Of a stretch of DNA of 64,000 bases, positions 41,901 to 63,681 are shown piece by piece. The position numbers and the translations under genes were made by a program. The DNA is from Caecitellus pseudoparvulus. Its lineage: Eukaryota; Protista; Bigyra: Bicosoecida. Every line of letters starts with the position of its first letter. Position 1 is the stretch's first letter. The notes beneath the pieces are model-generated. The model saw nothing but the letters and a program-made list of their open reading frames with translations, had not been told where the DNA came from and searched no databases. Location: NCBI GenBank assembly GCA_965644315.1, contig CBFFRQ010000031.1, positions 792,413-856,412 on the forward strand, read 5' to 3'.

Positions 41901-44900
41901 AGCAGTGCGACCTCACTGCACCCCACGCTGAAGCCCTGAAGAAGGTCGGGCAGCACGCACGGGCGGCAATGGCAGAGGGCGCAGCTGTGCCGGAGGTGTG
42001 CATGGTTCAAGCTGTCTTGTGTGGCATTCGCGACATGGCACGCGCACCAGTGGACCCGTCCCTGGTCCCACTGCCTGCGCACGGCGAACTCCCCTCTCCC
42101 AGCGCTGATGAGGCTGACGTTGAGCAGCCTCATGACACGGTGCCCGCTGCAGCTGCCGCCCCCATGGAAGATGCCAACGAAGAAGAGCAGAAGTATGAAG
42201 AGACGGGGCCAGCGAGTGCCAAGCCTAATGCCCGAGAGCAAGCCCATCGAGGATGGATTTTGGACGGCTTCCCGCAGACTCTCACTCAGGCAGTGCTGTT
42301 AGAAGAAGCCCTGACCTGGCAAGCTCCTGATCTGGGCCCTGGGCTGCCGGAGCGAGCCCGTGTGGAGGGCCGGGGGACATGGGATGCCAGTGCTGCCCGA
42401 CAGAAGGAACCCACTCAAGAGGACGCTTGGGAAGCGGGCATGGTGCCGCCGGTGCCGCCACACCCTGTTCTTGACGCGGACGCAGATGAGGAGGACGGCC
42501 TACCCAGCCATCGAGCGCCCCAGCCTGCCTCTGCCCCAGTTCCCCTGCCCAAGCACCCCCATGGCGTTAAGCTCCTGATCCGCCTCGTGCTGCCCCCTGA
42601 ACAAGCCCTGCGCAAGGTGCTTGGCGTGCGTGTGGACCCATCCCGCTTGGTCACCTTGGAAGCTTCAGATGCCGCTGAAGCAGCTGCCGTGCCAAGGGAT
42701 GAAACAGGGTCGCTGCAAGACGTCTTGGATGGTGACGTACCGTCCGCTGGCTCTGCCGTGTTTGGCCACGAGGGCGTCGACAGCACTGTCCGAGCTGGAG
42801 CCCGAGGCTTGAACCCACCCGCAGCTCTGCAGGGAGAAGCCATGAACGTGGTCGTGGGTGCTGAGCCGCTCCAATCCGTGATAGAAGGCAAGGCTGCGCA
42901 GGAAGAAGAGGAAGAGGAGGTGCGTCCCGCCACACCTCAGCGCCGGGCCGAAGCAGGCGGCCCCTCTTCGAGCACAGCGCCGCGCCAAGGCGTGGTTGGC
43001 GCAGAACACCTCGCCGCACAGGAGCAAGCGACCGCCACATTTACCGCCGGCTTGCCTGGAGCAGTCCCAGCAGTGGATGAGGTGCGCCCAGGCGGAGGTC
43101 AGCAGGAGCCCCAAGTGCACGAAGTATCCCCGGATGCCATGTTGCCCGTGCTGCCGGGCGGCTACGTAGTGTCTGCGCGACGAGGACATGTGGCATACCA
43201 CCTGGACTTGAACCCGCCACCCCACAAGTGCCGCACGGTGGAGGGCCTTGTTCCTCCTTCAAGCATCGACGCTGGCACAGCAGCGCGGCTGCCGAGTACC
43301 CTGACAAGCAGCACACTGCGCCTGCCGCCACCAGTGCTTGCAGAGGCCATGGAACGGTACTTTAACAGTGTTGAAGGCGTGGACGAGTTCTTCTGGGCAG
43401 GCAGTCGGGGTTCAGTGCTGCGCGTCGCTGCCTGGCGCCCGCACTTTGGCACTGGGCAAGGCAGAGAGGCTGACAGCGACGGTGATCAAGACAGCGCTGA
43501 GGAAGGCAAGAGCGCCAGTGACCTGGTCGGGGTGGAGGAAGGCGCTGGTGTGGTGGCAGATGGGGACGGGCGTGTCCTGTGGGGCAGCGATGCATGGGCC
43601 GAGTACGCGCCTGTGGGCGCCTGGGCTGCCAGCGGAAAGGGGGACGTGCTGACGGAGGCAAGCCTCTTCGCAGTGCTGAGTCGTGCAGCCTCGGCTGCCG
43701 AGGAAGACATTGCCGCTCGTGAGGCAGCTCGTGAGCAGGCGTGGAAAGAAACCCTTGAGCACAGGGATGCGGCCTTGGCCGCCGATGCCACAAGCGCTGC
43801 CACGGAGCTCGCCTTCCGCCGCGGGGAAGACATGCATGTGCAAGTTGTCGATGCTTTGGAGGCTCAGCAGGCAGAAGCCGCTGCAGCGGCCGTGGCTGCA
43901 GCGGCCTCCAAGAAATCTGGCTCCAAGGGCAAGTCCGAAAGTCCAAAGGCAAGTGTGGCAGAAGGCAAGTCTGTGGATGATGATGGATCCGAGCATGACA
44001 GTGCCCAGGAGGAGGCGTTGACCGCCTCTTCCTTGGCTGCAGAGGAAGCTGAGGTGGTCGCGCCAAGTCTGCACGAACCGTATGTGATTGCCCCCGACCT
44101 TCCACCTGCTCCTTCCTTGGCCCAGGTTCCTCCAGCCTCGCCAACTTCCGAGCCTGCCGTGCATGACACAGCTGAGGACGTGTCCCCCCAGCGGGCGGAA
44201 GCACAGGCTGCAGCTCAGGCTGCCCTTGCAGCGCGAGCCGCTGCCCAAGCGCTGGTTGTCACTCCAACACGCTTCGCAGGGGCTTTGGAAGACTCTGTGC
44301 CTCGAGACAAGGCGCTGAGCCTCCTTGCGCAACTCTGGCAGCAGGCAGTGTCACACTACGGGCAAACGCTCAGCAGCAGCTTCCACGGAGCTGCCATGGA
44401 GCAAGTGGGTGTGCACGCGCGGTTGGGGGAAACGAGCCGTCTTGTGCACCGCTTCTTGCGGCGCCCCGTCCCCACCTACCAGGCTCTCATGCGCCATGCA
44501 CAAGACGCCATCAACAGCTTGTCTTGGGCTGAGCGCATGGGGCCCTCAGCGGAGGCCTGGTCTCAAGCCCCGTCTGTTGAAGAAGCAGCATTGCAGGTGT
44601 GGGTGGAGGAGGCTCTGGAAGCCTCGGGTGGCAGCAAAGCTGCCGCCTCAAAGAAGGGCAAGGGTGCCGCTACGCCCGAAGCACAGGAGCCGTCGCCTGA
44701 AGCAGAGGCTGAGAAAGCAGCCTTGCGTGCGGCTGCGACCCGAGCTCAGCTGGCGGAGACGGTGCAGGTTGCCGCCAACTGCATGTTGGCCACTGCCGAA
44801 GCCCGGCGGGAGAGCGCCTTGCACCTGCTGCACGCTAAGGGGGACGACGGGTGGGTGCAGTACGTGCAAGGGGCGCTGGCGTCCCACTTCTGCAGCGCAG

Positions 44901-47900
44901 TGCAGGCAGAGGGCGACCGCCTTGTCGCCTCTCGCCTAGTGCTGATGGGGTACATGCGGGCGGCAGATGGGGCTGATGGCTGTGGTATCCTGACCGGTCG
45001 CAATGCTGCGCACACCCAGGACCCTGAGGATGAGGACACCGCCTCCACACCTCGCAAAGGCAAAGCCACTGGTGCCAGTCCGAAGAGCGGCAGCAAGAAG
45101 TCCGCAGCATCAGAAGACATCATGCCCGATTGCACCTCGGACATCCTGCAGCTCAGGGAGCATCTCGAAGGGACAGCACTCAGCGCCGTGGGAGCAGGGG
45201 AGTTGCTCGCTGCTGGCCATGTGCCGCTGCCCTGGGAGGGTTCCACAGGCGACGACCGCACCCCCTCCACCCCTCGTAAGGGTGCAGGGGGGAAGAAGGG
45301 CGGCGCTTCCAAGGCTGGCAAGGCCGTCGAGGAAGAGTCCAGTGCAGTCTGGCCACTGGCCGGTCCATCCCCTGCCGCAGCTATTGGCCCTGTGATTGCC
45401 CCCGTCTGCGCAACCCTCCCAGTTGCCCCCCCCCGTGCGGCACAGCCGACCCTTGCATCAGTTCCGGTCGTTCCGCCTCCGGCGCCAGATGCTTGTGACG
45501 CTCTGTGGCAGGCAGTCAAGCAAGACACAGCAGCAGCCCCTGATACAGCCCGCTCTGGCAGCAGCGCGGGTAAGAAGCGCAGCCCACGCAAGGGGCCTTC
45601 TGCAGTTGACCCAGATGATGATGGACTGCAGCACTGGCCCACTGGTTGGCCTGCAGCCAGTGAGCTTCCAGGCACTCCCCCCAGCGAGTGGGAGGCTGTT
45701 GCTGAAGCGGCAGGGGAAGCGGCGTCCCGACTGCGCACGCTGATCCAGGGTGCTGCACTTGGCACCGGCGTTGGTGTGCCAGCCCATGGGGCGCAAGAAC
45801 AGGCGCTCATGGAAGTTCTGGGCGCTGCAGTCGCTTCACTTGCCCGGGCCACGGCAAGCGAGTCCCTGGCACAGCACTTTGCCGTGCAAGCTGCAGCTCG
45901 GGCAGAGGCACTGAGCGCTGCACAGGGCGGCAAGGGCAGCAAGAAGGGCGGCAGCAGCAAAGCAGGCAGCAAGAAGGACAAGCGCAAAGGAGGCAAGGAT
46001 GACCCTGCTCCCGACGAAGTCCAGCAAGCGCTGGCTTGGCGAGATGCCGCCTGTCCACCTCCAAGAGCGGACCAAGCGTTGCGACTGGCCCTGCAGGGTG
46101 CCGAGTCGCTTGCAGTCAACGTGCTGCGCCTGGTGGACGCCGAGGCGCAGACGCAAGAGCTGCAACGCCAGCGCCACGCCGCCCTTGCTGTTGCCCGCGA
46201 GCGCCAGCGGCGCCGCCTCGAGTCGGAAGCTGCTGAAGCGGAAGCAGAGGCAACAGCGGCGATGGAGGCAGCACAGCTGGCTGAGGAGGAGGCTGCCGCT
46301 GCTGCAGCCGCTGCGGCAGCGTCGCCCAAGAAGGCATCCAGCAAGAAGGACAAGGCATCCGCCGGCAAGGGGGGCGGGAAGAAAGACAAGAAGGCAGGCA
46401 AGGAGGAGGTCGTCGAAGCGTCCCACCTCCCCCTCCCTGATGCAGGGCACGCAACCGTTCCCCCTGCCACCTGGTCAGCGGTTGTCGCCCAAGTGCAAGA
46501 GTTCCGTCGCCGTGTGCGGCAGTTGTGCACGGCAGCTGGTCGAATGTGCGCAGCTGTGGAGGCTGCGGCGTCCCGAGCCATGCGCGCTGGCGAAGCACGC
46601 ATAAACTACATCATTGACCAGGAAGTCCGCGCCGTGCGTGCTTTTGAGGCCTACGCCATGCAGGCCGTGGCTTCTGGCGCTCGGCTGCCATACGAACTGC
46701 GCTTTGTGCGGCCTCACGCAGCAGCTGACCTGGACTTGCTCCTGCCTCATCATGTGCAGCAGACGCCCAGCTTGCTGCCTTACCAAGTCCCCGAAGCTGC
46801 CGCGCTGGGACGGGGAGTTCCGCACCCGTTCGCTTTGGACGCGGCCCATGGCTTGAGTGCTGAGCCAGTGCCGGAGCCTGCGGAGCACAGCGAGGGCAAG
46901 GATGCTGCTGGTGCCCCTGGGCTGCCTCTCCTCAAGGCTCCCGTGCAGCTAGTGAGCCCGACTGGAGATCCACTTGACCCCACGCCATCAAGTGATCCGC
47001 AGGAACACGCGCTCCCGTACTTTCAACTACACTTCCACGTGGACATCACCAAGCGCGTGCTGCCGCCCCCCACTGCGAACCCCAGGCCCCCGCTACTCGT
47101 CACGGACACACCGCTGCCGTTAGATGCGTCTGTGGGGCCAGCCACGCCCACCCCGCAAGCCCTGTACGCGCTCGCCATGCGGCTGCGAGGTGCGTCGCTG
47201 CGATCTGCTGTGGGCGGCGCGCTGCACGAGCGCATGTACCACGTGGACTCGGACGTGCTGTGGCCCTCACCGCCACCCATGCATGCGGAGAGCATGGAGC
47301 TGTCTGCAGGGGAAGGTGAGCAAGAGGAGGAAGAAGCGGAGGCAGAAGTGTCACGCAAGCCTTCGTCCAAGAGCGGCAAGAGCCAGAGCGCTGGAAAGGG
47401 CAAGGGCGGAAAGAAGGCTGGAACTAAGGAAGGTGACGAGGCCGAGGCGCTAGCCACTGCCCAGTCAGCCACTGCGCAGGCAGTGCTGGAGCGGGAAAGG
47501 CAGCTGCTTGGCGCCGAGCTGGCACCTGCCGGCACGTTCTTGACGCTGCGAGAGTTCCTGGACACTGTGTCGCAGGCTGTGCAAGAAGGAGAGCTACCCG
47601 AGGCATGGAAGTGGCTCCCTGAGCAAGCGCTGGCAGAGCTTGGACTCTGCTTTGCCACATCCCTGGACGACCTTGGGTCCTGGAGCGTGCACGTGGAGGT
47701 GGAGCCTGAGTCCAGCGTGCAAGCCCGCATCCAGTACGCGAAGTGGCAAGCGAAAGAAGTGGAGCGCTTGGTGAAGGAGGAGCGCGAAGCACAGGCGAAG
47801 GCCGATGCAGAGGAGGCTGAACGGCTGGGCATCACCATCGCTGAAGTGGTGGCCATGCGCAAGGCCAGCACCAGTGGGCGCCAGGCGGCAGAAGACGGGG

Positions 47901-50653
47901 AGGATGAAGACGGCCTGGGCCCCCTCCCATCAGATGCTGCCACAGACGCCGGCGAAGGGGGCGACGAGGCTTCAGGGGCCACCCCACGCTCCCTCCGCCG
48001 GATGCCCTCCGGCTCAAGCGTGTACAGTGCAGACGATGCGGGATCAGTGATGGACGCGGAGGCAAGTCACGGCCCCAGCCGCCGGTGTGTCGCTGGCTCC
48101 CCACTGGACGCGCAGCAACTGTCTGCACTTCTACCCACTCAAGGCTCTCTGCTGTCACCCCTGGCAAGCACAGTACTGGGCGCTGGGGCAGAGAGTGGCG
48201 GTCTTGCAGCAGACTCCACCGCTCAGTCCTCTTCAGTGCTCCCTGTGGAGGACGTCTCTGCCGAAGACGCTGGCATGATGCACGACACCAGCAAAACGTC
48301 CCTGGGCGCCGGTGCTAGCGAGCAAGTAGCGGATGCAGCAGGAGAAGGCAAGGCAAGCGACGAGGCCGATGCCGGGGAAAGTACTCGCCAACGCTTCTCC
48401 AGACTGTGCCCTGGCCCAGCAGACTGGCCCTGGGAGGAGCCCGCCGGCATTCGACCCAGGACCAAGGTTGTTCTGCATCACCCCCTGCTTCACAGGCAAG
48501 CGCCTCTCGCCATGGATGCCGAAGAGTGGGAGGCTCTTGTGCACACCTGGGGTGATACCAGTGTCCTGGAGCTGCCAGCCGCCTGTCCCACCACGGCACC
48601 TCGGCGAGACCTGCAACTCGCTTTACATCAAGTGCTGCAGGCTTACCTGGATGGCCCCAGTGTGGAGGGCAGCAGTGATGTCTCAGGGCATGATGACGTG
48701 CCGGAAGGCAAAGCCGGAGAGCCGCCGTCTCCGCCCGCTGAGCTGTCCACCCCTGCCAGTGTGGTGCAGGAGCAGTTTGCTCAGGGTGTGTGGCCACCCA
48801 TCGCTGGCGACGTGACAACTTCAGGCATTGTGCATGAAGTTAAGCCAGTGCCCGTTTCGGCGCCAGGAGCTGTTTGGATCGACTGGGACGTCGCCTTTGT
48901 TGAGGGCCAGAGTGCTCCTGCAGTTGAGAGCCCAGTGCCAGAGCTTGCAGCCGCTCCAGCTGCGGCTGCTGCTGCCGGGGCAAATTTCGCGTCGACGGAA
49001 ACGAGCACCTCCGCAGAAAGTCCTGCGGATGGCACTCACAACACGGGTGCAGGCTCGTCTACAAGCCTATCACCACAGCAGCGCTTGGCTTCAGCCCGCG
49101 CGAGTGCTGCTGCCGCTGCCATGGCAACCCTTCACCCTCCTGTGAACTTTTCCCGCCTTGTCGACTGGCGTGCATTCATGGCGTGGATGTGCGTGACAGG
49201 CCCTTCGCCGACGTCCAAGGCTTTTGCCGACAACCCAGCAGCGCCCAGTGACATTGAAGATGTTGAAAGCCGTGATCTGTGGGCACCCGAGGTCCAGGGG
49301 GGGCGAGACTTCGCCGTTCCAGACATCAGAGCCTTCGCCACCACTGTTGGCAAGGGCTGGGGCATCGCCGCATGGCCTGACCATGATGACCTGGATGCTC
49401 TGCATTTAGCGCTGCAAGCGGCGTCAGATGCAGCAGCAGCGTCGCCTGGCACTACCTCGGCAGCATCAGAAGGAGTTGCAGCGCCCCCCAACGCTGGCGC
49501 TGGCACGGAGCTTAGCGTAGTGACGCGCGAAGATGTTCACTCCGCCCTTCCAGCAGGTGTGATCCAAGCTGTGGCTCCTGAGTTGAGTCCCGAGGCCGCA
49601 TCGCCTGAGATTCAGCCAGAGCCGGCACCGGAAGCAGGCACCCCGCGAAGCCGCAAGAAGGGCAAGGGCAAACGGGGTGGAGCGAGTGAGGAGCCCCCCC
49701 CGCCTCCCATGACTCTCACAGCGAATCGCGAGTGGCGTGATCCCCTGACTTCCGCTCAGTCGGAAACGTCGGCGCTGTTGCCCCATGTTGCGGCTGGGAG
49801 TGAAGGTGTGCGGTTGTGGTTCCAAGGCATGGGACTCCACGCGAAGCCTACGCCCGTTGCATTGGCGGATGCAGCCGCAGCGGCCGCGGCTCAAGGCGGC
49901 GATGCAGCAGGCCTGGCGAGCCGAGCAGAGGCGGAGGTTGAGCAGCACCTAGCCGCTGTTTCTGCTTCAAGAACACTTGCACGCAGTGAAACTGGGCTGC
50001 AGGTGGGCTGGCACAACGTGTCGGTACAGCACGGCTCTCAGCTTTCGCTGTACGTGTCTGACATGGCTGCCCGCGCACAGATACTTCGGGGACAGGCCGA
50101 TGAGGAGTTCGCGCTATACACCGCTCTTGCCGACAGGGATGTCGCTGCCTCAGTCAAGGACGGTGATGACATCATGCGTGGCGTGCTGTTTCAAGCCATG
50201 TCCGATGTTCGGGGACAGATCAATTCCGGCCGCCTGCTGGGCCTGTGGCGCCGCCGAGCGAACCTTCTTGACCGCTTGCCTTCCCAGCTTCCGCAGGAAG
50301 AGGGCGAAGAAGCCCCACACGGAGACTCTCCCGTGGAAGGCCTGGGGCCCCTTCCATGCGTGAGACGCACAGCTCTCATGTCTGCCGCTGAAGCCCAGGC
50401 CGTGGCGCAAGACGCCCAAGACTCCGCTGCGCTGCCTGGTCCCAGCACAGCGACCCTGCACAAAGTTTTGCTGGACTTGTATGGGTGGGTGAGCAGCACG
50501 GCTGCCCGTGCCAAGCCTGAACTCCTAGCGCTCCAGGCAGCAGCAGCGGCGGCCGCGGCTGAAAGGCTTGCCATGGCAGAAGAGGAGGCGGCCACCCGCG
50601 AAGCCGATCGGACCACCGCAGCATCATCCAGACCAAAGCGAGGCAAGAAGTAA
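38999..50653 (+). CDS. SPEF2: SPEF2/CPC1-like central-pair protein (CH domain + degenerate adenylate-kinase domain), ~3880 aa, one uninterrupted ORF
   Basis: ATG 38999. MDILLHWL..LAEHFSNGYAFAVVLH..KIQNY..L..LGIKF is a SPEF-type calponin-homology domain. ADK-like VALVGPPGSGVSTQA, GWILDGFPQTLTQAVLLEEAL and YHLDLNPPP. Lys-rich KKGG tracts. Confidence 0.8.
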   Translation: MDILLHWLQDEVKLPGPVDDLAEHFSNGYAFAVVLHNTNQMTPAEFGQCVQDEKSDSKIQNYCQLFPVFRRLGIKFDARVAQQLMLRKPGIAQRVLYELRTVLAPLSRVRVGRDSESKQRLLKQRLTTRKPQYDAAQAAIFERNIRAAAENQNAVFLDKHMAKFKQHVDELWASRDATHAARVGAHRSALRQQRQQRLHALRTRHMVVHAREEAGIREWQRNQEIRLAQVLAAREFRATKAAKARAAARRRVADAQRDTTSDIAAFEARAVAQGVPVVGAEPLDEATLRRSVAPEAGEPSTEEEAKLAQLPGTTLTSQDTLHLRLTRKLATIQAREDSEPSPVMQRLQSRGGGGGEALAARAARRSAFLVASRASRTRLHARQRHAQLKGLLMHRCASEQELDDVVLRTLKCELVFRQNRACREAAVAEQARRDADLQLARQRASLLQQQSAFEDDVTASADGMVEAAGARRRAHVHRAHAIALACVQELVEAALGLACAREASNMRLLEQSAGSAAMPSLCVPQQGEEEGKEAEGKEERGGVAKADGGVLVQCPGGVDPLAAIFTRVGFRHAAGMHSHTQWAASQALPLPDVLATPDFDDVVSPKAGGRKSPSGRRSRASDTADDAHTEVLAVQRAAAASLGGAGAATLPADAAAHETSHSQPMPGVPIPPGVVVAMLGVQAQPAGCSSHGEGPSALDEGLPKASVEVSVGGEDDASEGGDGEEGADAGAVERIQARSGREDDVEQLRLPSGAGEGGAVSVGGSLEQAPVQSGDGSAELLPQQASCGMADTEASPVAMELFQHYVAGHFVWPADAPVPDVLGDEEAVAAAQAPLEAPFPPVLEAESSLLSPKKSPSSKKGRADVAEVVLPHPAPQPALAAEPQLHAAKHLLGSVLQKLRRATGPEPALPPACDVPQFPLTVALVGPPGSGVSTQAGFLAAALSLKVLRPNALMSQALSMADGSLSTEQCDLTAPHAEALKKVGQHARAAMAEGAAVPEVCMVQAVLCGIRDMARAPVDPSLVPLPAHGELPSPSADEADVEQPHDTVPAAAAAPMEDANEEEQKYEETGPASAKPNAREQAHRGWILDGFPQTLTQAVLLEEALTWQAPDLGPGLPERARVEGRGTWDASAARQKEPTQEDAWEAGMVPPVPPHPVLDADADEEDGLPSHRAPQPASAPVPLPKHPHGVKLLIRLVLPPEQALRKVLGVRVDPSRLVTLEASDAAEAAAVPRDETGSLQDVLDGDVPSAGSAVFGHEGVDSTVRAGARGLNPPAALQGEAMNVVVGAEPLQSVIEGKAAQEEEEEEVRPATPQRRAEAGGPSSSTAPRQGVVGAEHLAAQEQATATFTAGLPGAVPAVDEVRPGGGQQEPQVHEVSPDAMLPVLPGGYVVSARRGHVAYHLDLNPPPHKCRTVEGLVPPSSIDAGTAARLPSTLTSSTLRLPPPVLAEAMERYFNSVEGVDEFFWAGSRGSVLRVAAWRPHFGTGQGREADSDGDQDSAEEGKSASDLVGVEEGAGVVADGDGRVLWGSDAWAEYAPVGAWAASGKGDVLTEASLFAVLSRAASAAEEDIAAREAAREQAWKETLEHRDAALAADATSAATELAFRRGEDMHVQVVDALEAQQAEAAAAAVAAAASKKSGSKGKSESPKASVAEGKSVDDDGSEHDSAQEEALTASSLAAEEAEVVAPSLHEPYVIAPDLPPAPSLAQVPPASPTSEPAVHDTAEDVSPQRAEAQAAAQAALAARAAAQALVVTPTRFAGALEDSVPRDKALSLLAQLWQQAVSHYGQTLSSSFHGAAMEQVGVHARLGETSRLVHRFLRRPVPTYQALMRHAQDAINSLSWAERMGPSAEAWSQAPSVEEAALQVWVEEALEASGGSKAAASKKGKGAATPEAQEPSPEAEAEKAALRAAATRAQLAETVQVAANCMLATAEARRESALHLLHAKGDDGWVQYVQGALASHFCSAVQAEGDRLVASRLVLMGYMRAADGADGCGILTGRNAAHTQDPEDEDTASTPRKGKATGASPKSGSKKSAASEDIMPDCTSDILQLREHLEGTALSAVGAGELLAAGHVPLPWEGSTGDDRTPSTPRKGAGGKKGGASKAGKAVEEESSAVWPLAGPSPAAAIGPVIAPVCATLPVAPPRAAQPTLASVPVVPPPAPDACDALWQAVKQDTAAAPDTARSGSSAGKKRSPRKGPSAVDPDDDGLQHWPTGWPAASELPGTPPSEWEAVAEAAGEAASRLRTLIQGAALGTGVGVPAHGAQEQALMEVLGAAVASLARATASESLAQHFAVQAAARAEALSAAQGGKGSKKGGSSKAGSKKDKRKGGKDDPAPDEVQQALAWRDAACPPPRADQALRLALQGAESLAVNVLRLVDAEAQTQELQRQRHAALAVARERQRRRLESEAAEAEAEATAAMEAAQLAEEEAAAAAAAAAASPKKASSKKDKASAGKGGGKKDKKAGKEEVVEASHLPLPDAGHATVPPATWSAVVAQVQEFRRRVRQLCTAAGRMCAAVEAAASRAMRAGEARINYIIDQEVRAVRAFEAYAMQAVASGARLPYELRFVRPHAAADLDLLLPHHVQQTPSLLPYQVPEAAALGRGVPHPFALDAAHGLSAEPVPEPAEHSEGKDAAGAPGLPLLKAPVQLVSPTGDPLDPTPSSDPQEHALPYFQLHFHVDITKRVLPPPTANPRPPLLVTDTPLPLDASVGPATPTPQALYALAMRLRGASLRSAVGGALHERMYHVDSDVLWPSPPPMHAESMELSAGEGEQEEEEAEAEVSRKPSSKSGKSQSAGKGKGGKKAGTKEGDEAEALATAQSATAQAVLERERQLLGAELAPAGTFLTLREFLDTVSQAVQEGELPEAWKWLPEQALAELGLCFATSLDDLGSWSVHVEVEPESSVQARIQYAKWQAKEVERLVKEEREAQAKADAEEAERLGITIAEVVAMRKASTSGRQAAEDGEDEDGLGPLPSDAATDAGEGGDEASGATPRSLRRMPSGSSVYSADDAGSVMDAEASHGPSRRCVAGSPLDAQQLSALLPTQGSLLSPLASTVLGAGAESGGLAADSTAQSSSVLPVEDVSAEDAGMMHDTSKTSLGAGASEQVADAAGEGKASDEADAGESTRQRFSRLCPGPADWPWEEPAGIRPRTKVVLHHPLLHRQAPLAMDAEEWEALVHTWGDTSVLELPAACPTTAPRRDLQLALHQVLQAYLDGPSVEGSSDVSGHDDVPEGKAGEPPSPPAELSTPASVVQEQFAQGVWPPIAGDVTTSGIVHEVKPVPVSAPGAVWIDWDVAFVEGQSAPAVESPVPELAAAPAAAAAAGANFASTETSTSAESPADGTHNTGAGSSTSLSPQQRLASARASAAAAAMATLHPPVNFSRLVDWRAFMAWMCVTGPSPTSKAFADNPAAPSDIEDVESRDLWAPEVQGGRDFAVPDIRAFATTVGKGWGIAAWPDHDDLDALHLALQAASDAAAASPGTTSAASEGVAAPPNAGAGTELSVVTREDVHSALPAGVIQAVAPELSPEAASPEIQPEPAPEAGTPRSRKKGKGKRGGASEEPPPPPMTLTANREWRDPLTSAQSETSALLPHVAAGSEGVRLWFQGMGLHAKPTPVALADAAAAAAAQGGDAAGLASRAEAEVEQHLAAVSASRTLARSETGLQVGWHNVSVQHGSQLSLYVSDMAARAQILRGQADEEFALYTALADRDVAASVKDGDDIMRGVLFQAMSDVRGQINSGRLLGLWRRRANLLDRLPSQLPQEEGEEAPHGDSPVEGLGPLPCVRRTALMSAAEAQAVAQDAQDSAALPGPSTATLHKVLLDLYGWVSSTAARAKPELLALQAAAAAAAAERLAMAEEEAATREADRTTAASSRPKRGKK

Positions 50654-53946: not shown

Positions 53947-55392
53947 CACAGTAGTTGGAATGCACAGCAGCACCGTGCGCCCAGTCTCTCACGCCTGTGT
54001 CGTGCCTGGTACGCTGCACACCTCACCCGCTGCATGCCACTCGCCCCAGATCTGTCGCGCAACACAGCTGCCGCCGAGATTGGACAGGGCTGATCACCTG
54101 CGCTGCAACTTGCAGCATGCTGGGACCCCGCCCGCCCACTGACTGCGCGACACAGACCCATGATCTGATACGCTGCAGGAAGGCTTCGCCAGTCAAGGCG
54201 ACCCAGCACGCGGTCCAGTTGCCTCATGCAGTCATGAGATCTTCTGCCTCCCCCATACACCCCCCTCCAATACCACTACGTACCCGTGTGCGGGGGGGGT
54301 GGGCACACCTTCGCCGGCGCGTCAGAAGATGGAGATATGTCATAATGACATTGTTTCGTGTGCACATTGTGTCAAACTCGTTTCGTGCTGCAGGCGCCGT
54401 GGCGGGCCGTGCAATGGGAAGAGGTGGATTGGCGTGGTGGCGCCGGAGGGCAGGGTCGGAGACCGAGCCAGGCAGACTGATCAAATTTTCTGGTCGTTCT
54501 GGTGAAAGTCACAGAGCGTACTAAGTTTGATGTTTAGATTCAGATTATTGCACCAGCGCGCGATGGGTCGCTTTGGCTGGCGCAAGAGACCGCCGCAAAG
54601 TGGGCCTTTTTGGGCCCCAAATTCCGCCAAGACAGCCGGCCCGCCAACTGCCTGCGCCAGTTCCCTTGTACCGCTGCGTACGCGCGCTTGAAGATGATTA
54701 CCTGTTCAGATGGTGCATGCTAAGCATCAAGAGCGTTTTTCTGGCCGATGCAGCGCCCCCCTTGACAGGCTGTCTTGGGCTGCCTTGCGCGGAGTGGCGG
54801 ATCCGCCTCACGCATCCTCGCTGGCGCTGCGCTGCTTGTCGACGGGGCCCTGCAGCGCCCAGTGGAAGCGGTAGGAAGCTTCCCCTGGATTGCCCTTCGC
54901 GATCCAAGGCGCTTCGTGCACGACCGCCGGGCCAGCCACCACGCCCCCGTCGCCAGCACCCCCGGCTCCGCCTTGCACTCCGGCGTGTGGTCCACCCGCC
55001 CCCACCCTTGCACCTCTGGAGCGCCCAGATTCAGGTGTCGACACAGGAGGAGGGTCTTGTCGGGCATGTAGCTGCGTGCATCGTCCCTCAGTGGCGTCAT
55101 GGCCTGCCCTCCATCTCACGCTCAGGCTCCAAGTCCGAGCTTGAGACTGCTCCGAGGTAGGCGCCCACACAGCCCTGAACACCTCCATCACAAGCCCGAG
55201 CGCGCAATGCACGCCGTGGTGGTGTGCCAGCGTTTACTTCCATGCCACACCCCCAGCTTGGCGCTGAGAGACGGCTACGCTAGGTCAGCTCACACTCTCG
55301 CGACGCAGCTGAGAACGCACCCCGCCCGGCCCGTCGTCCGCTCGGAAGCGAGGCAGCGGGCCAGCATCCGCAGACCCCCCCCTGCGCCGGCA

Positions 55393-55430
55393 ACGCTGGA
55401 ACTGCCTTTGACTGGCAAGGTGCTGTAGCA
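55393..55430 (+). repeat. Left terminal inverted repeat
   Basis: ACGCTGGAACTGCCTTTGACTGGCAAGGTGCTGTAGCA versus the reverse complement of 63595-63632, ACGCTGGAGATGAGTTTGACTGGTAGGGTGCTGAAGCA. Confidence 0.8.
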
Positions 55431-56284
55431 CAGCTCTTACAGAGGCTCTAAAGCCACCTACCTTCTCAAACTGCACTAAACTCAGACTTTTTACCGCAAA
55501 GTCTTAGCTGGATGCTGACTTGCGGGGATTGGTGTACGTACGTGTTCGTAGTGGCTCCTTGAAATGCAACGTCCCACAGGTGGATGGTGTCAGCGCAGGT
55601 GCAGTGACACAGGGCCAGCCTAGCGTGACTACACAGGCTTCCCAGAGCTTGGTTTTTGCTCTGTTACATTCGGAGTGAAAGTTTAATTTGGTTGGGTCGA
55701 TATTATGCCTGAAACCTCAACAGGGCCTGCCGGAGAGGTGCAACTCCATCTGGGCAGAGTTTCATGAAACTCCACAGAGCTTCGGGGCTCTATCTTCGGC
55801 TTCTTCAAGCAAGCACCAACAGGACATTGTGTGGGGGCTCGATCAGTATGCATGCAACACTGCCTGCGTAGTCTGCGTGGGTGAAAGGCCCTGTGCATTG
55901 CGGAATCCGTGTCGGCGACTTCTTGGTGCGGGCTGGCTTCTCCTGCCTCCCGCCGACCCGGATTGCCGCCCATCCTTGCGCAAGCCCTGGTAATTTTCAT
56001 GCTAAGGTCAAACCTGAAGACCTATTGCAGGTTTAGCATAGGCTGTAGCGTCTCCGCAGCATCTCCGCTGACCAATTTGACCTCTAGCTCCACTTGGCTT
56101 CTTGCCTTAGGTCCCATTCCGGAAGTCTTGTGCGATGCTTACTCCATTCTCCACCCAGGGGGGCTATGGCTCCTCAAAACGAAGGTCCATGCCGGAAAGA
56201 ACCACTCTGACTTGCACACCACTGCGAAGTGGGCCTGCAGTGCTCCCTGAAGCTCGCCCGCAGGGCACCCAGCTCCTTCTACTC

Positions 56285-58219
56285 TCAGGTCTTCCTGCGT
56301 TTTCCTCTGGAAATAATGCGGTACTCGCTCTTGCGGGCCAAAAAGGTTGACTTGGACATGAGCAAGTCTGCTCGGTCTTCCTCGATGTCGCCTGTCAGAT
56401 GCTGGGGACTCGCCGGTTCGCACTTCGTGACCAGCTCAAGCAGCTCGCCGCCGTCCAGCTTCATGTACTCCGCTTCAATTACCTTGGACCTTTCCTGGAG
56501 CCTCCCACATACAGTTTTCCCATCACGTGGGTCATACAAGTACGCCCGTGTGTGCGCACGGGTGTTGACCATGAGGTACCACTGCGGCTGCTCAATCAGG
56601 CTGAGCACATCCCCATCCTGCACTTCACTGCCGTCATCCTCGTCATCCTCTGCAACACAAGCTGCCCCAGACCTTGCCAGACTTGCAGCCGATCTTTCCC
56701 GCTGTCTCTTTGTCCCGCCCAGCCTTTTCTCCGACCTCTGTGGCACCTGCACAGACTTGGCAGGCACTCTGTCGTGGCTGTCGCCATCCTCAAATGTGAT
56801 GGAGTGTGTGCCGTCGGCTCGCACCTGTGACACACGCCCAGGGTACCAGCCATCGGGCCCATTCGTCCACCCCCAGTCCATGGACTCTCCGTCCTCCCCT
56901 TGGCCGGATGGGATGAATGCCCGTGCGATGACGGAGTCACCCTCTTGGAACTTGGGCTGGAACGGGACTGGTGGGTGGATAACTGACCTCTCCCTCGTTG
57001 CATGGATGTATCGCATGGCCTTGGGAATGTCTTGCAGACCCCTCTCTCTCCAAAGCCTGCCAAGGTCCCCAACCATGTGCGTCACCGCCTCAGTCCATTC
57101 GGCCTTGGGCACGTGTGCAAGTCGGCTGTGGTCCACTTGGTCTCTGACTGGTCCAAGACGGCCATCAGGGAAGCACTGAGCAAGCTGTGGCTGCGACTCA
57201 TTCCCCGGTACAACGTACACGCAGTCCCAGCCCTGCGCATCAAATGCCCGGACGATGTCTCCTCGAATGGTTGTGACGGAGGCCGCCGCTGAGGGCTGGC
57301 CGAGACCTGCAAGGACATCCGGGCGCCAAAAGGCACCTGCACGCCGCTCCGCATCCTCTGGGAAGGCGCTCCATAATACCAGGCTTATCATCTGTGCCAG
57401 ACAGTCCCCGCTCTCAGCCTCTCGCAGGCTGCGCAAGAGTGCCCAATGTTTCGTTGCCGCCTTCGCAAGGCGCTGGACTGCCAAAGGAAGGAAGTCATCC
57501 ACAAGCAGGAACACTGGCTTGGGGGGCAGTCTCACCACTCTGTCCATTATGAAGCCCTTGGAGTCTACGATGATGGTGTGTTCAGGATTGTCCCCGAGCC
57601 AAACGCGGAAGACTTGTTTCGTGGACACGGCATCCGCTCCCTCTCGAGCCACGTACAGCGTGTCCAGTCCGATCGCATCAAGACTGCCTTCAGCCGGCCT
57701 GGATGCAACTGGTGCGCGTGTTGAAAACTTCCTCACCATGTTCTTGCTTGTAACCGACGATGGTTTCGTTTGCTGCGTCCGGCGGTTTGGGTGCTTGCGG
57801 AGAGCTGGCTGTGCGCTCGAAGCGTCAGAGGGCTTCAGTCTGCGTGCGTGTGCTGGGTCCACTTGGGAACCCTTACCAGGCGAAGTTCGCAATGTCTTCT
57901 TTCGTCGAAGTTTTCTGGCCACGTGCCCTGAAAAGTTCCCAGAGTTTGCAACGTACTTCTCCCTGCTCCGTGCCCCCTTGGCGGCGGCATCCAGCACTGG
58001 AGCCCAGCAGATCTCTGGGTCACACTCCGTTGCAGCCCGCTTAACAAGCCTGACTGCTGAACTTGGAATGGCTGAACCGAGTCGTTCCATCTTCAGTGCC
58101 AGGGCTGCCAGCTCCTTTGCAATTGCCTTGGCCTCTGGTGCGCTCGCCTCATTGCGCTTGCGGCTGTTGAGGGAGACTCTGTGACTGGCGAGGCAGCACC
58201 CTCCGGATTCTGGGCGCAA
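56285..58219 (-). CDS. C-terminal part of the element protein (or a second ORF): basic linker, unknown domain and Tudor-like domain
   Basis: Overlaps the transposase ORF in the -1 frame. Tudor/Agenet-like FQEGDSVIARA..GWYPGRVSQVRADGTHSITFEDGDSHDRVPAKSV at ~56950-56745. Ends in KRRKT. Confidence 0.7.
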   Translation of the reverse strand: MRPESGGCCLASHRVSLNSRKRNEASAPEAKAIAKELAALALKMERLGSAIPSSAVRLVKRAATECDPEICWAPVLDAAAKGARSREKYVANSGNFSGHVARKLRRKKTLRTSPGKGSQVDPAHARRLKPSDASSAQPALRKHPNRRTQQTKPSSVTSKNMVRKFSTRAPVASRPAEGSLDAIGLDTLYVAREGADAVSTKQVFRVWLGDNPEHTIIVDSKGFIMDRVVRLPPKPVFLLVDDFLPLAVQRLAKAATKHWALLRSLREAESGDCLAQMISLVLWSAFPEDAERRAGAFWRPDVLAGLGQPSAAASVTTIRGDIVRAFDAQGWDCVYVVPGNESQPQLAQCFPDGRLGPVRDQVDHSRLAHVPKAEWTEAVTHMVGDLGRLWRERGLQDIPKAMRYIHATRERSVIHPPVPFQPKFQEGDSVIARAFIPSGQGEDGESMDWGWTNGPDGWYPGRVSQVRADGTHSITFEDGDSHDRVPAKSVQVPQRSEKRLGGTKRQRERSAASLARSGAACVAEDDEDDGSEVQDGDVLSLIEQPQWYLMVNTRAHTRAYLYDPRDGKTVCGRLQERSKVIEAEYMKLDGGELLELVTKCEPASPQHLTGDIEEDRADLLMSKSTFLARKSEYRIISRGKRRKT

Positions 58220-61200
58220 CCAGGGCTCATCTGAGACCCATCAACTGGATTCGAGTCCGTCTCAGTGACGCTCAGCTCTTTCCCTCCAAATGTTTCCGAT
58301 ATCTTGCTTGCGACATCACAGCGCAGGATCTCCTGAGCGTAGTGGCGTGCTGCCCAGCCGTGCTTGCACGAAGCTGTGGATCCGTGGGCAGAGCAGTCGC
58401 AGATTGGGCCACATGTTCGGGGGTTAGCCAACGAGACGAGGTAGATGTTATTGGTCTGTGACTCGCTGTGGATCTCGAAGGTCAGCGTCTTGCAGTCTTG
58501 CAGGTTGATACGTTCCTCCAAGACACCCTCCTTCTTCCACCGTAGGAACATCTCGAGCCCTTTCTTTTTTGACTCTCTCGCCATTCGTTGTACGGAACTC
58601 CGGGCACCTGTCCTGTACGTCCGGGCCACTTCACGACACTGGATGTACGACACTAAACAGCCTCCCTTGTCTGGCTCTGGCCCTCCTACAAGCGCAACGA
58701 GCATCTCATAGGTTGAATGGTTGTAGCGCCGCTTCAAGACCCGGTACTTGAGCATGTTCCACATTGACTCAACATAGTTTGTTGTGTTGTCCATGGAGCG
58801 GTCATTGCGAAACCAAAGTGCCCATGTTGGCAGCCACGCGTCACACAGCCAGTTCGCCTCCAAGTACTCCAGCGCTTTGCGGTACTTAGGATCAGCGCAC
58901 ACGTCTTGCCTCATGACTTGCCAGTGGCGGTGGAGCTCTTGAGGCGACGTTGCCGTGAACAGAGTGCGGGCTGCATCCGTGAAGGTGGTTTTGCTCTCTT
59001 GGTCTGGAAGGGTCATGGTGACGCTCTCGTTCACAGCCTTCAGAGCGTGGAAGTGACAGAGGAACAGCTTGCTATGCAGCATGCGTTCCAGCATCCGCAC
59101 TTCTGGAATGTGTCTGAAGGCGCTGAGTTCATGGGTATGCTCGCGAAGCGTCTGGATGGTTTCGTGCACAGGCAGCCACTTCGCCTTGCTGGCATCCTCC
59201 ACCGCGCCGATGTCGCCCAGCTGCCGCTGGGCCGCCTGGGCAGAGACCTGCAGCGAGCGGGGCACGTTGGGATCCTTCCCCACTTTATCCAGCAGCCTCT
59301 TCATCTTGGTCCCCACGTGCCATGCGAAGGCGGAGTGGCCATGTGGGCACTTGTCCATCATCTTGGCGGTGAGGTGAAACGCACCACCCAGCTCGGCCTC
59401 CATCTTCTGGTACGACCACACGAGAGCTTGGGCTAGGGCCCCAGGCACTGGGTTTTTCCCTGCATGGAAGTACATGAACGCAACTGGGATGCCATGTGAG
59501 GTGTGGGGTGACCTGTACAGCCACGTGAAGAGCTTTGACTTGAACTTGTCGGTGCCTCCCGTGTCATCCTCGTACACCAGGGAGTTCATGGACTCCTTGT
59601 ACTCGCTTGTAGCTGCATACTTCCTCATTTGCGGTGTGATTATGAGCAAGACACTGAAGTCCTCCGCTTGGTTGAGCTTGTTGAGGTGGACGTAGGTGTT
59701 GGTCGTGTCTGCCGCCGCCATGTCCACACACGCCTGAAAGACGGACATCCCCCCGCGCTGCTCTCGCTTCATTTTGTCCAAATATCCCTGGATTGCGGCA
59801 GGGGAGGGGTGAATGTTGAACAGTCCATGCTTGCGTCTGAGACCAGCGTCCTGCATGAGCTGGGACGTGGCTGTGTGCTTGTCTTTGAGCATCTGGTCGT
59901 GCTTTATGTATACCTCAGGGGTTGAGCACTGTGTCTTGGCTAGGAGATAGGTAAGGATGTCAAGCATGGATGCGCCAGGGGTGCTTGCTGCCCTTTTCTT
60001 TATGATTTCCGTCACCACGGGGCTGAGGGGCAGAGACATGTACTCCGCACGACCGACCTGCTTGGTCGGGTCAACGGGTTCATCGATTGCGAAGTACTTT
60101 GCAGGGGTGTGGTTGTGGTGCATGCAAACCTCCAGAGTGTATCCCTTCTGACTTAGGGTCACCCGTATCCTGAAGGGGCACTGCTGGCAAAGTCTTTGTG
60201 GTGAAGCCAGAGCAGCGTCACGCTGTTGCGGATCGTGAACAGGGCTGCTTGGTTCTGGACTGCAATCCGAACCTGCAGAGTCAGGGCTTGTGTGTGTGCA
60301 TGCAAATGTCAAAATGACTTGCCCCTGCTTCCCGCGCCACGGCTTGTTCTCCAGCTTGATGAGGCATCCAAACTCCCTCGCCGCTTGTGAGAGCGCTGGG
60401 CCACATTCTTCGAGCGGGCCAAATCGAATGCGCTGCCCGAGTGACCGTCGATGGACAAGCAAGGCATGCAGAGGACTGCTTGCCCCCTTTGGCGTTGGCA
60501 GGATGCTGGAGACTATGGTGTCTGTCCTGGGAGTCTTGTCCACACGGGATAGTCGGACCTGGATGATGGTGGCCTGAGCAGTCGCATGCGCTAGAGTTAC
60601 TTGGCTATGATGCCGGTGCTCCTTCAAGATGAGCGCCCCTTGATGAGACGCAGCCCGCACGGCGCGCACGACATCCACCGGCGCCACCCCAGCATGTCTG
60701 GTTGCTGCCAGCACATCTCGCAAGCGGGTCAAGGCTTCCCTGTTCTCCAAACCGCAGTGCTTATCTACTTCGTTGGGGAGCTTGCCGATGCTCGCCATGC
60801 TAATCACATTGGCAAGAGTCAGCTCAAGGACTGGGTTGAGCTGCAGGCACGTGCGGATGGCTTCAATCACGCGTGCAAAGTCCAGCAGCACAGGCGCGGG
60901 AGTCTCGATATGGGAGCAAGAGCTACCGGTCATGCCGCCCATTGAGCTGGTGCTCGTGATGTCGCTGTCAAAGAGAGCAATCGGACTCAGGCCGAAGTCT
61001 AGATAAGCAGCCAGCCCAGCCCACGCATCCCTGTCTGGCCTTCCCTTGTGAAGCTCCGCCCAGCTTTTGGCCAAGCTGAAGGCAAGGAGGTCACTTGCTT
61101 GTGCACCATCTTCCTCCATGCCAGCTCTGACTCTTGAAGCTTCGGACTTGTTGAAAAAGACGTACATGTGCCCAGGTACGTCCACTGCACACTTGCCTGC

Positions 61201-63412
61201 AAGCTCGGCAAGGCTTTCCAGGTCTCCTGGGAAGTCATGGACAATGACGCGATCGTATGCGTACTGCGGCATGTCCAACGCCACTGGCAGCAGGATCACG
61301 TCCACGCAGAGGCCTTGTTGTGTTTGGGGCCACCCACCAGAGCTTTGGGGTTCAAGAGCTTCCGTGTCACTTCGAGCCAGAGCTTTGCGGACACGCCTGT
61401 CCAGGGCGTTTGTCGTGGCTTCGTCCTGGCACACAACAAGCACCCTTTCGAAGCTCTGGAACTGAGCTAACAACTCAAGAACTTCATCAAAAGATTGGTG
61501 CTTCGTTGCTGCTGCAGCAGACCTTGGGCGAGCTCCGCTGCTGCCACAGGCAAGTGGCTTGTGTGTCACATGCAGCTGCACTGCAGTCCGGACACTGCGC
61601 CTGGCAATGGTAGTGTGCTCTGGAGCAAGGTGCAGGTACGAAAGGATGCGAGGCACGGTGCCTGGCGCAGCTACAGTGCTCGTGGCGAGAACAGGGATGC
61701 TTGCTGCTTGGGCAGCCTGGCTCAACTGCCTCAGGGGATCACTGTCGACTTGCATGAGTGGCAAAGGACCCGCAGGCAGGTTCATGACGAGTGCCACAAG
61801 CATTCTATGTTCACGAGTCGACGAAGTTGTCGACAAGAACTGCATCGCCTGTGGGATGGACGCAACGATCACGGCCCCTTGCGTCAAGCTTGGATGGAGA
61901 GCGGCATCGCTGGGAACCATGTCACCAGCCGACGCACAGGTGGCGACGCAGTCCCCGAACGAGGGCACTTGTCCAACTGCAAGCTTGTGCGCCACCTCAC
62001 AGTCGCAATCAACTTCATCGGAGGGCAAGATACACGCTGCTAGTCCACTTTGTAGCAGGCGCGACACCTTTGCCCAATGCCGGGATGGACAAGGGCTCGC
62101 CAGGAGGACAACCCCCTGCAAAGTGCCAGCCAGCAAGCCGAGAAGATCCGCTTGATCGTTATCCAGGGGCGAAATAACAAGCGAGTGCTTCCCTGCACGG
62201 GTGCTTTGAAGTACTTGGGCGTGGTGAGGCTGTGGACTTGCTTGAACCCCCAGCACCGCCTCGATCGCTGCCGGTTGCCCTCCACCAGCGCCTCCGAGTG
62301 CAGCCACAGAGCTTGAATCAGAAAGGCAGAGCTTCTGGAAGTCTAGAGCCTTGACGAGCACCGCTGTGTGTGCTCCGGTCGCGGGCTCCACCACTAGTTG
62401 GGGAGTGGCCTCTGCCTCTGTGCCTCCGCCTGCCCCCGAGGCTGGACTGGGCGCTGCAGAGCTCCCAAACCGCCTTGTCTCGATTATAATTTCCTCTCTA
62501 GCCCCTGGAAGTTCAATATCCGCGTCGTCTGAATCCTCAGCTTTGGCTGCCTGCAGCCTGGACGACTTGCGAGAAGCACGTGCTTGGCCCGCTGCTCCTC
62601 CGGCCAAGGATGCACAGTGTCTCGGCTCCACAGCCCCGAGGCCGCAGTGGTCCTCGCTCAAGAGTGTAAGCACTTCGACTCCAAGGAGTTTGACAACTTC
62701 CTGTGCGACTTGAGCCTGTTTCCAACCAATGGGACGACGTGAGGACTCCTGTGCTCTGCGATGGACTGCGCTTGCGCCTGCAGCGACGAAGCTCTGGATA
62801 TCCCCCGCTTTGATTGCCCATGGGTACTTTCCTGTCAGATTAAGCTTCTTTGCCTGCAAGCAGAGCAAGCTAGGTGCGGAACTGAGCGCTTAGGAGCCGC
62901 AAATGGCGACTTACTTCGTCGAAGAGGAAGCCCGCACTACGCTTTCCCTTGTAGAAGCCGCCATCCTGTGCCAAGGCGAAGATTATCGAGTCCCAGGTAT
63001 CTAAAGGAAGTAGGTATGTTCCCCCGTTTGACATGAGGTGCACTGTGTCGTAGCTTGCGTCCTCAGGAGGGTCATCTGTGACCTGCAGCGCATCCTCTCC
63101 TGCCAGTGACAGGATGGACGACGCCAGAGCAGCAATCCGGGCCTTTGAGACACCCCCACCGAGCGTGTGAGAGTTCCATTGAACTTTGCAGCCCCTGATC
63201 ACGCTCGAGACTTGTGTCAAGTCGACTGTGGCAGGCAAACTGCCTCTGGATGAGAATCTCTGCGATTTCAAACCAGGCCTCTTCATGGAATTGAGCATGA
63301 TCTGGGCGAGGCGACGGGAAGCCAGAGCGCCAAAGGGTACTGAACATGATTTTATGCCTGCAGCATGCTTCACGTATTTGTGGGTGATGCCTTTCTGGCC
63401 AGCGGAAGCCAT
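58093..63412 (-). CDS. MULE transposase fused to an inactive RecQ-like helicase core (2 exons)
   Basis: ATG 63412; a 61-nt intron 62914-62854 (GTAAGT..TTGCAG) joins the 220-aa and 1591-aa ORFs (FLFDE|AKKLN). RecQ-like region ~62270-60620; WRKY/GCM1-type Zn region FACTH..CPFRIRV..HNH ~60300-60108; D (YEDDTGG ~59567), D (KMMDKC ~59354), CHFH (~59050), E (TTNYVES ~58769); SWIM CDC-x8-CKH ~58400-58358. Confidence 0.85.
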
Positions 63413-63594
63413 TTTAGGTGGAGGGTACCCGAAACGCCTGTGTAACGCCAGGGGGGAAATGCACCCGAGCCCGTATCTCACGATGCCTGCGAACCTCACG
63501 AACAGAATCATGTAGAGATAGAAGCTGCACACACAAGAAACACGCTGCGGTGCAATGAGGGTGTTAATTTTGCACGACCTTGGTGAAAATGCCC

Positions 63595-63632
63595 TGCTTC
63601 AGCACCCTACCAGTCAAACTCATCTCCAGCGT
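63595..63632 (-). repeat. Right terminal inverted repeat
   Basis: Inverted partner of 55393-55430; lies ~180 bp upstream of the transposase ATG. Confidence 0.8.
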
Positions 63633-63681
63633 CATACCCCCCCTCCAGCTTCAGTCAACCCCCCAAGAGAAACACACAGCA

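Follow-up and report, generated by a model that had tools for sequence, protein, structure and literature searches.

In a 64,000-nucleotide stretch of the genome of the protist Caecitellus pseudoparvulus (G000:C31:792413-856412, in an assembly of 30.6 Mb, ~60% GC and 215 contigs; hereafter, the window), positions 55389..63638 hold a putative transposon of 8250 bp that runs from GG.. to ..CC and carries its gene on the minus strand. We read this region, with a probability of about three in four, as a copy, with slight damage, of an autonomous transposon of the cut-and-paste type that comes from a divergent Mutator lineage and whose transposase would be fused to a dead, retained RecQ module. The predicted protein comprises, in this order, an N-terminal region, a RecQ-family module, a C..C..HxH zinc finger, a DDE core with a CxxH motif, a SWIM domain, a long linker, and a Tudor/Agenet-like module. 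Much the same order had been proposed in a first-pass annotation made from the letters alone (N-region, RecQ-like part, zinc finger, core of the Mutator-like element [MULE] type, SWIM, Tudor-like part), and it is supported by alignments and, at the C-terminus, by weak signals.

A DNA search of the genome recovered seven full-length copies, 93–95% identical and distributed over six contigs (the window copy and L006 on C31, L002 on C94, L003 on C33, L004 on C38, L005 on C54, and L007 on C30). Measured between the common terminal motifs GG[AC]AAC[AG]CTGG and G[TG]C[AG]T[AC]C, from which we took the limits of the element, six of them are 8249-8250 bp long. The ends form an inverted repeat of 49 nt that is 76% complementary and the longest repeat pair of the region, with its left arm on the gene's 3′ side (55393..55441) and its right arm on the 5′ side (63584..63632), the latter being of a terminal type found in the window copy only. 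When the terminal 60 nt of the window's two ends were aligned with each other, they scored 18 as against −8.9 ± 3.5 for shuffled sequences; the ends of the other copies scored more weakly than those of the window and were still positive. The window copy, L002, L006, and L007 are flanked on both sides by sequence unrelated to that around every other copy, arguing that the family has spread through new insertions and not through block duplication alone. The first-pass annotation had claimed a mobile 8.2-kb unit bounded by terminal inverted repeats and suggested a search for other genome copies; the seven full-length copies, with their common limits, inverted ends, and unrelated flanks, bear this claim out.

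The outer 120–200 bp of each end (55389-55560 and 63440-63638 in the window, and the equivalents in L002-L007) fall into three sequence types that are differently combined among the copies. On the left, type A is found in the window, L002, and L007 (these three being near-identical from 55387 inward), type B in L005 and L006, and type C in L003 and L004; on the right, type A′ is found in the window, B′ in L002, L005, and L006, and C′ in L003, L004, and L007. These mosaics argue for exchange between copies, by recombination or conversion. In nearly all copies, C-runs adjoin both ends in direct orientation, as would a target duplication in a C-rich site. The best candidates are TCCCCCCCC in L005 (9/9), CCCCCCC(C)AC in L006 (9-10), and CCCCCCCT in the window (8). 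Of the target-site duplications that had been suggested for inspection, candidates of 8–10 bp thus exist in three copies, with C homopolymers blurring their exact limits, and a duplication of ~8–10 bp is likely, the length given for Mutator elements being about 8–11 bp. L002 and L007, whose end types are mismatched, are the two copies without a candidate duplication, which fits recombination between copies.

Three copies (L003, L004, and L005) share sequence outside their left end, over 344 bp for L003 and over at least 4.5 kb, at 93–96% identity, between L004 and L005 (L039 on G000:C33; L041, G000:C38:155140-165139; L040:1-4519, G000:C54:340870-345388). This shared flank encodes an open reading frame (ORF) of 1081 aa (L040:243-3485, minus strand) that has no Pfam match and recurs as partial copies on C23 and C212. 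On the right, no two of the three copies have related flanks. An empty target site was not found by way of the repeat beside L003, L004, and L005, other copies of which do not cover the site. Such a shared flank, together with the low copy number of seven, the recombination evident from the mosaic ends, and the lack of both a clean target duplication and an empty site, is what one might expect if the copies were not a transposon at all but members of a host gene family or segmental duplications. This seems scarcely credible, given the identical limits of 8249-8250 bp and the inverted terminal motifs of the six measured copies, the unrelated flanks on both sides of at least four copies, the complete DDE transposase layout of the protein, and the disabling mutations in most copies, as are seen in transposon copies.

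Besides the full-length copies, the DNA search returned a single piece of 1.3 kb and a handful of fragments with 70–75% identity; neither non-autonomous derivatives nor solo ends were found in the genome. Protein-level genome searches with the RecQ-like part and the transposase core revealed no second, more distant family, but only the seven copies. Short fragments 70–75% identical to parts of the element lie at G000:C95:165668-166542, C43:235693-236332, C204:34-364, and C94:124511-124700 (L009-L012) and may be older relics of the element's own or of a sister family. Outside this genome, the sequence of the element is present, whole or in parts, in marine or seawater metagenomes and cultures from at least 11 studies.

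In the window, the gene appears as two minus-strand ORFs in different frames, one of 1591 aa (58093-62868) and one of 644 aa (56285-58219), with the stop codon of the full-length gene called at 56285..56287. In L004 and L005, the two form a single uninterrupted frame of 2201 codons, and the long exons of the window and L004 differ by a single indel, the loss of 1 nt from the window copy at codon 1579, behind position 58155 (58154..58155, minus strand); a contig from run X20 carries an extra base at 58151. The −1 frame break, which had been taken for a feature of the gene, is instead a private deletion of the window copy that splits its long frame. This frame has no ATG in its first 315 codons, yet the stretch aligns with the N-termini of the metagenomic relatives described below. 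Upstream lies a first exon of 166 codons (62915..63412, minus strand; ATG at 63412-63410); all copies preserve the context of this ATG, AAAATGGC / AAAATGTC. Removal of a 61-nt GT..AG intron (62854..62914, minus strand) joins this exon in frame to the long ORF, in agreement with the single spliced gene proposed at first pass. The intron measures 61 nt in all seven copies, starts with GTAAGT or GTAGGT and ends with TGCAG, its GT..AG ends being kept in six of the seven. Furthermore, contigs from runs X18 and X20 lack the 109 nt between 62838 and 62948 and have 48 other letters in their place, so that they are exactly 61 nt shorter; this is consistent with a spliced message from a copy with another local sequence variant, if the runs are, as we guess, RNA. 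Exon 1 is open in five of the seven copies (with a stop in L005 and L007) and, searched separately from the long exon rather than as part of a spliced protein, matched no Pfam family. Stops or frameshifts interrupt the long exon of L002, L003, L006, and L007. Judged from the sequence, then, the gene is composed of two exons encoding a protein of ~2350 aa, and the window holds a slightly damaged copy of it.

Single-sequence searches are blind to relatives of the front module: by phmmer against 1.84 billion representatives, the RecQ-like part retrieved nothing but a fragment of 97% identity and a low-complexity match, so that the relatives had to be reached through the transposase core. (The fragment, P0006 or NCBI MED5165410.1, comprises 241 aa and has been deposited as a hypothetical protein from a Cyanobacteriota metagenome-assembled genome; the contig is probably a mis-binned eukaryotic one.) A search with residues 1050–1520 led to metagenome proteins of ~2000 aa, with E-values from 1e-60 to 1e-24, and a second search started from one of these added two more. 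The resulting relatives make up eight clusters (P0001-P0005, P0012, P0014, and P0015; 1839-2117 aa, with a 1309-aa fragment representing P0005) and stem from marine metagenomes and from assembly GCA_024449685.1. In front of the common core, all eight carry the Pfam domains DEAD (PF00270) and Helicase_C (PF00271) above cut-off. A profile of these helicases matched RECQL5 (2e-32), E. coli RecQ (2e-23), and BLM (2e-23), followed by RECQ1, RECQ4, and WRN, ahead of other superfamily 2 (SF2) proteins. The window family shares with these relatives the order of RecQ helicase, conserved middle region, zinc finger, DDE/CxxH, and SWIM, at an identity of 27–34% in the core (31% over 680 aa to P0001) and 17–19% in the RecQ-like part. 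It differs in that the helicase motifs, intact in the relatives (PTGxGKT, DEAH, SAT, QMAGRCGR), are destroyed in the window family, and in that the relatives' C-termini are unlike the window's and are without a Tudor signal. Scans for inverted repeats around the genes of two relatives (L031 and L032) gave no convincing ends.

Through these relatives, the front module (60958..62295, minus strand; two RecA-like lobes) could be tied to RecQ. When the front part of the window family was compared with the relatives' helicase profile by hhalign, the match had a probability of 97.1% (E = 6.9e-11) and extended over 354 columns and both lobes. Of all PDB sequences, a phmmer search with residues 157–767 matched just two, RecQ from E. 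coli (1oyw, E = 0.072) and RecQ from Cronobacter (4tmu, E = 0.26); each match consisted of two colinear stretches, one per lobe. An AlphaFold2 (AF2) model of residues 188–830, built from an alignment of ten sequences that included relatives, had a mean predicted local distance difference test (pLDDT) score of 53.7 and showed an alternating strand-helix pattern. Its top 50 PDB matches by Foldseek were all RecQ-family helicases (E = 1e-13 to 1e-10), and by VIA-align it was closest to BLM (Z 24.6; root-mean-square deviation 3.5 Å over 360 residues), WRN (24.0), D. radiodurans RecQ (23.9), and RECQL5 (23.6). By itself, the predicted fold says SF2, and RecQ best; fold and profile evidence together make RecQ descent firm. 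Thus, the resemblance to RecQ noted in the first-pass annotation is indeed colinear over both lobes, and the SF2/RecQ fold that was to be looked for in the front segment is what the model comparisons returned.

The catalytic motifs of this module are gone. Where the relatives have PTG[AS]GKT as motif I (Walker A), the window reads PLDNDQA (62149..62169, minus strand); motif II, DEAHLNxEWSxFRPD in the relatives, has become QVDSDP with the deletion of ~11 residues (61735..61752, minus strand); motif III has changed from SAT to STV; and motif VI from QMAGRCGR to ELAGKCAV (61183..61206, minus strand). These losses, which agree with the substitutions reported at first pass, are identical in all four copies that were aligned over the RecQ-like part, save for single variable positions in motifs I (the N) and VI. 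By this comparison, the front module is RecQ-derived and would no longer work as a helicase. Behind the lobes, residues 477–572 of the model (60592..60879, minus strand) form helices and a beta-hairpin at pLDDT 50–77, in a stretch that few of the RecQ or BLM alignments reach; this segment may be a winged helix. In the alignment with the relatives, motif VI is not followed by a conserved quartet of Zn-binding cysteines. The RQC domain that had been claimed is therefore hinted at by the model and not otherwise seen.

Loss of all ATPase motifs might suggest that the RecQ-like part is a functionless, decaying relic whose frame has stayed open by chance, in a family that is dead or mobilized in trans. 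The part is also more diverged from the relatives (17–19% identity) than is the core (27-31%), and in six of the seven copies the gene is interrupted at some point by a stop or frameshift. We therefore compared non-synonymous with synonymous differences (pN/pS) by Nei-Gojobori counts in three independent pairs of copies, these being simple counts on copies that recombine. Over codons 196–650 of the long exon, which cover the RecQ-like part, pN/pS was 0.42, with a non-synonymous share of differences of 0.56 against 0.75 expected under neutrality (binomial p = 4.6e-10). The constraint is thus no weaker than that on the DDE core in the same pairs (0.42; linker, 0.38); exon 1 gave 0.65. As an average over all pairs, pN/pS came to 0.38 overall, with 0.43 in the RecQ-like part and 0.28 in the DDE core. 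Because the differences between copies include neutral decay after insertion, constraint in the active lineage must have been stronger than these figures show. Five of the seven copies were counted as free of indels in the long exon (leaving aside the window's deletion at codon 1579), with the frameshifts of L002 and L007 falling within the RecQ-like part or at its edge. In addition, the predicted fold is still that of a two-lobe helicase, and protein-level searches found no intact-helicase relative in this genome that might supply the function. Decay is accordingly an improbable account of the RecQ-like part. Rather, the part appears to evolve under purifying selection and to be retained, as the first-pass annotation had supposed when it spoke of a pseudo-helicase; neutral evolution, which would have spoken for decay, is not what the counts indicate.

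Downstream of the RecQ-derived module, the catalytic residues of a transposase are intact, as far as can be read from their invariance between window and relatives. A C..C...HxH zinc finger, possibly of the WRKY/GCM1-like type (60109..60300, minus strand), precedes the core; its residues C857, C869, H918, and H920 are invariant and have the right spacing in the relatives, and its only Pfam signal was AFT at E = 0.16-0.17. The DDE core (58744..59586, minus strand) contains, in the numbering of the 1591-aa ORF, D1101/D1102 in YEDDTGG, D1172 in KMMDKC, C1271-x2-H1274 in LCHFH, and E1367 in TTNxVES, all of them shared by window and relatives. A SWIM-type zinc finger, CxC..CxH (CDC..CKH; 58360..58401, minus strand), follows with C, C, C, and H invariant and with weak Pfam SWIM matches in the relatives (E = 0.033-0.062). 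The order of zinc finger, DDE core, and SWIM domain is that of MURA and FAR1. Transposase_mut (PF00872) was matched weakly in seven of the eight relatives (E = 6.5e-5, with the core alone, to 0.066), and the core profile had a single PDB match, a Mutator family transposase (6xg8, E = 0.079), in a stretch that ends at the catalytic E. Look-alikes of the core by protein-language features were MULE+SWIM clusters, at 0.94-0.96 with 180-186 shared features. Each of these signals is weak, yet all of them agree and none points elsewhere, arguing for membership in the Mutator superfamily. We consider it very probable that the core represents a highly divergent lineage of this superfamily (MuDR/MULE); the intact D/D/CxxH/E and SWIM of MULE type claimed at first pass are consistent with these data.

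RecQ helicases have been reported in two other groups of DNA transposons, Academ and Kolobok (PMC3627910; PMC9587614), which raises the question of whether the element belongs to the AcademH or KolobokH lineage and not to Mutator. AcademH target duplications measure 9-10 bp (PMC10045372), as do the best candidates here, and the window core lacks a Pfam MULE match. On the other hand, the helicase of KolobokH is located downstream of the transposase (PMC9587614), whereas the module in the window is upstream of the DDE core. According to the motif list for the Mutator superfamily from which we took the CxxH motif (PMC9587614), this motif speaks against Academ, by comparison with published descriptions rather than with an Academ or Kolobok reference sequence. 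Such Pfam and PDB matches as the core has are all to the Mutator family, its feature look-alikes are MULE+SWIM clusters, and its order of domains is the MURA/FAR1 order already mentioned. Kolobok elements target TTAA, while the flanks found here are C-runs. An AcademH or KolobokH origin is thus quite improbable.

Near the C-terminus, a third module (56714..56986, minus strand; ..GDSVIARAF..WGWTNGPDGWYPGRVSQVRADGTHSITFEDGD...) resembles Tudor and Agenet domains. Its best PDB match by phmmer was the hybrid Tudor domain of KDM4B (E = 0.0098), followed by the Tudor domains of PHF20/PHF20L1 and by plant Agenet proteins at 0.04-0.4. Pfam Tudor_3 and Tudor_5 were matched at E = 0.013-0.014 with 15.7 bits, as compared with cut-offs of 25.8 and 31, and in the feature comparison the best seven matches were all Tudor/Agenet clusters, with a top score of 0.86. 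The Tudor-like module proposed in the first-pass annotation thus has three weak sequence signals on its side and a fold model that failed, and we think it probable that it is Tudor/Agenet-like. The C-termini of the relatives show no similarity to that of the window (hhalign probability 0.1%), no Tudor signal, and no PDB match; the Tudor-like module therefore appears to be specific to the window family. An OTU-like motif, considered as a further candidate, found no support in Pfam or PDB, and the 420-aa linker and tail had no PDB match.

Several observations weigh against our reading of the region as a copy of an autonomous Mutator-type transposon with a dead, retained RecQ module. Neither expression nor movement of the element has been observed, and the two runs with spliced-looking contigs, X18 and X20, are RNA only by guess. 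Both exons are open in L004 alone, the copy whose left end carries a nested insertion (see below). The C-runs at both ends prevent the target-site duplication from being fixed to the base. Pfam searches of the window ORFs and of five sub-segments gave no family that reached its cut-off, MULE (PF10551) was never matched directly, and PF00872 attained at best 20.6 bits in the relatives where the cut-off is 21. No stand-alone relatives of the core, of 390-1240 aa, came out of a profile search. The helicase model has a mean pLDDT of just 53.7 from an alignment that included intact relatives, and DEAD-box helicases, at Z 19 or less, trail closely behind its RecQ matches; the AF2 model of the C-terminal 302 aa, at pLDDT 34, was unusable. 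Finally, the pN/pS values come from simple Nei-Gojobori counts on recombining copies.

How might such a protein work? Muta1 transposes by double-strand-break excision with formation of a hairpin on the flanking DNA, and its freed 3′ ends are joined to a staggered target (PMC5499845). By analogy, the DDE core of the window family would cut and join as Muta1 does, via a flanking-DNA hairpin, and in the ancestor the fused RecQ helicase may have aided the opening or processing of DNA at the ends, or a repair step. The live RecQ of the relatives, along with independent capture by Academ and Kolobok, argues that unwinding helps transposition, perhaps in end opening, hairpin handling, or gap repair. 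In the window family, the helicase would then have become an ATP-independent DNA-binding or structural module on which the transposase still depends. The Tudor-like module, not being seen in the relatives, would be a later addition, and may tether the protein to chromatin.

For the present role of the dead RecQ module, we give about even odds to that of a DNA-binding or assembly module of the transpososome. It is unlikely that it chooses C-run targets, or tethers the protein to chromatin together with the Tudor-like module. A fuller version, in which the captured RecQ serves as an ATP-independent reader of DNA structure or sequence and, with the Tudor-like reader, directs a transposase that is still mobile to C-run/G-run DNA in certain chromatin, seems to us similarly doubtful. 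The C-runs adjoining the ends of the copies are the sole lead toward what the first-pass annotation had envisaged, namely binding of G-quadruplex or forked DNA, a decoy for host RecQ, or chromatin-guided targeting. If targeting were nonetheless its role, this would be a pseudo-enzyme acting as a targeting module inside a transposase.

Two sets of observations concern the surroundings of the copies. An insertion of ~4.4 kb (G000:C38 ~150,720-155,150, between L004 and L038) interrupts the left end of L004 at 22 bp from the tip. It has inverted ends of 16 bp (ATAGGTCTCGTGAAAC / GTTTCACGAGACCTAT), is accompanied by a duplication of 3 bp (CTC), and is another DNA transposon, possibly of a CACTA/Plavaka-like kind. 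On the same contig, L038 (G000:C38:155140-156991) is 100% identical over 1852 bp to L037 (G000:C104:1-1852), and contig C104 appears to be a part of C38 that was assembled twice. In the window, very long ORFs lie upstream of the element, of 3917 aa (38900-50653, plus strand), 1957 aa (25179-31052, plus strand), and 1636 aa (31966-36876, minus strand), and between 12001 and 16000 the GC content falls to 0.47-0.54 as compared with 0.60-0.70 elsewhere in the window.

The relatives and the window family together would constitute a large unannotated protein family in marine eukaryotes. As a third, independent capture of RecQ, this time by a Mutator-type element, the family would show RecQ-type unwinding to be a recurrent aid to cut-and-paste transposition. 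It would also provide a clear case of a pseudo-enzyme retained in a mobile-element protein, as well as a natural comparison between a live helicase in the relatives and a dead one kept by selection here, in copies that are only 5-7% diverged. The first-pass claim that a fusion of a MULE transposase with RecQ is undescribed agrees with the full-text literature, where we found no description of RecQ fused to a Mutator-like, MuDR, or MULE transposase and RecQ only in Academ and Kolobok, in an incomplete check that had Repbase outside its scope.

Set beside known systems, the element shares with MULEs such as MURA, FAR1/FHY3, and Muta1 a zinc finger that may be WRKY-like, the DDE core with CxxH, the SWIM domain, and terminal inverted repeats. 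A long target duplication is probably a further trait in common. It departs from them in the length of its predicted protein (~2350 aa as against ~700-1000), in the RecQ-derived module in front and the Tudor-like one behind, in a core too diverged for Pfam MULE, and in inverted repeats that are short (~50 nt) and imperfect. In common with AcademH and KolobokH, it is a DDE transposon that has taken up a RecQ-family SF2 helicase; unlike theirs, its transposase has a CxxH motif, a zinc finger, and a SWIM domain, and its helicase is placed upstream, in frame, and appears catalytically dead. Finally, RecQ helicases themselves (E. coli RecQ, BLM, WRN, and RECQL5) are the best match of the predicted two-lobe fold (Z 21-25) and are linked to the module by homology via the relatives, whereas in the window the Walker A lysine, DEAH, motif III, and the arginines of motif VI are replaced, and the Zn-binding cysteines are not seen.

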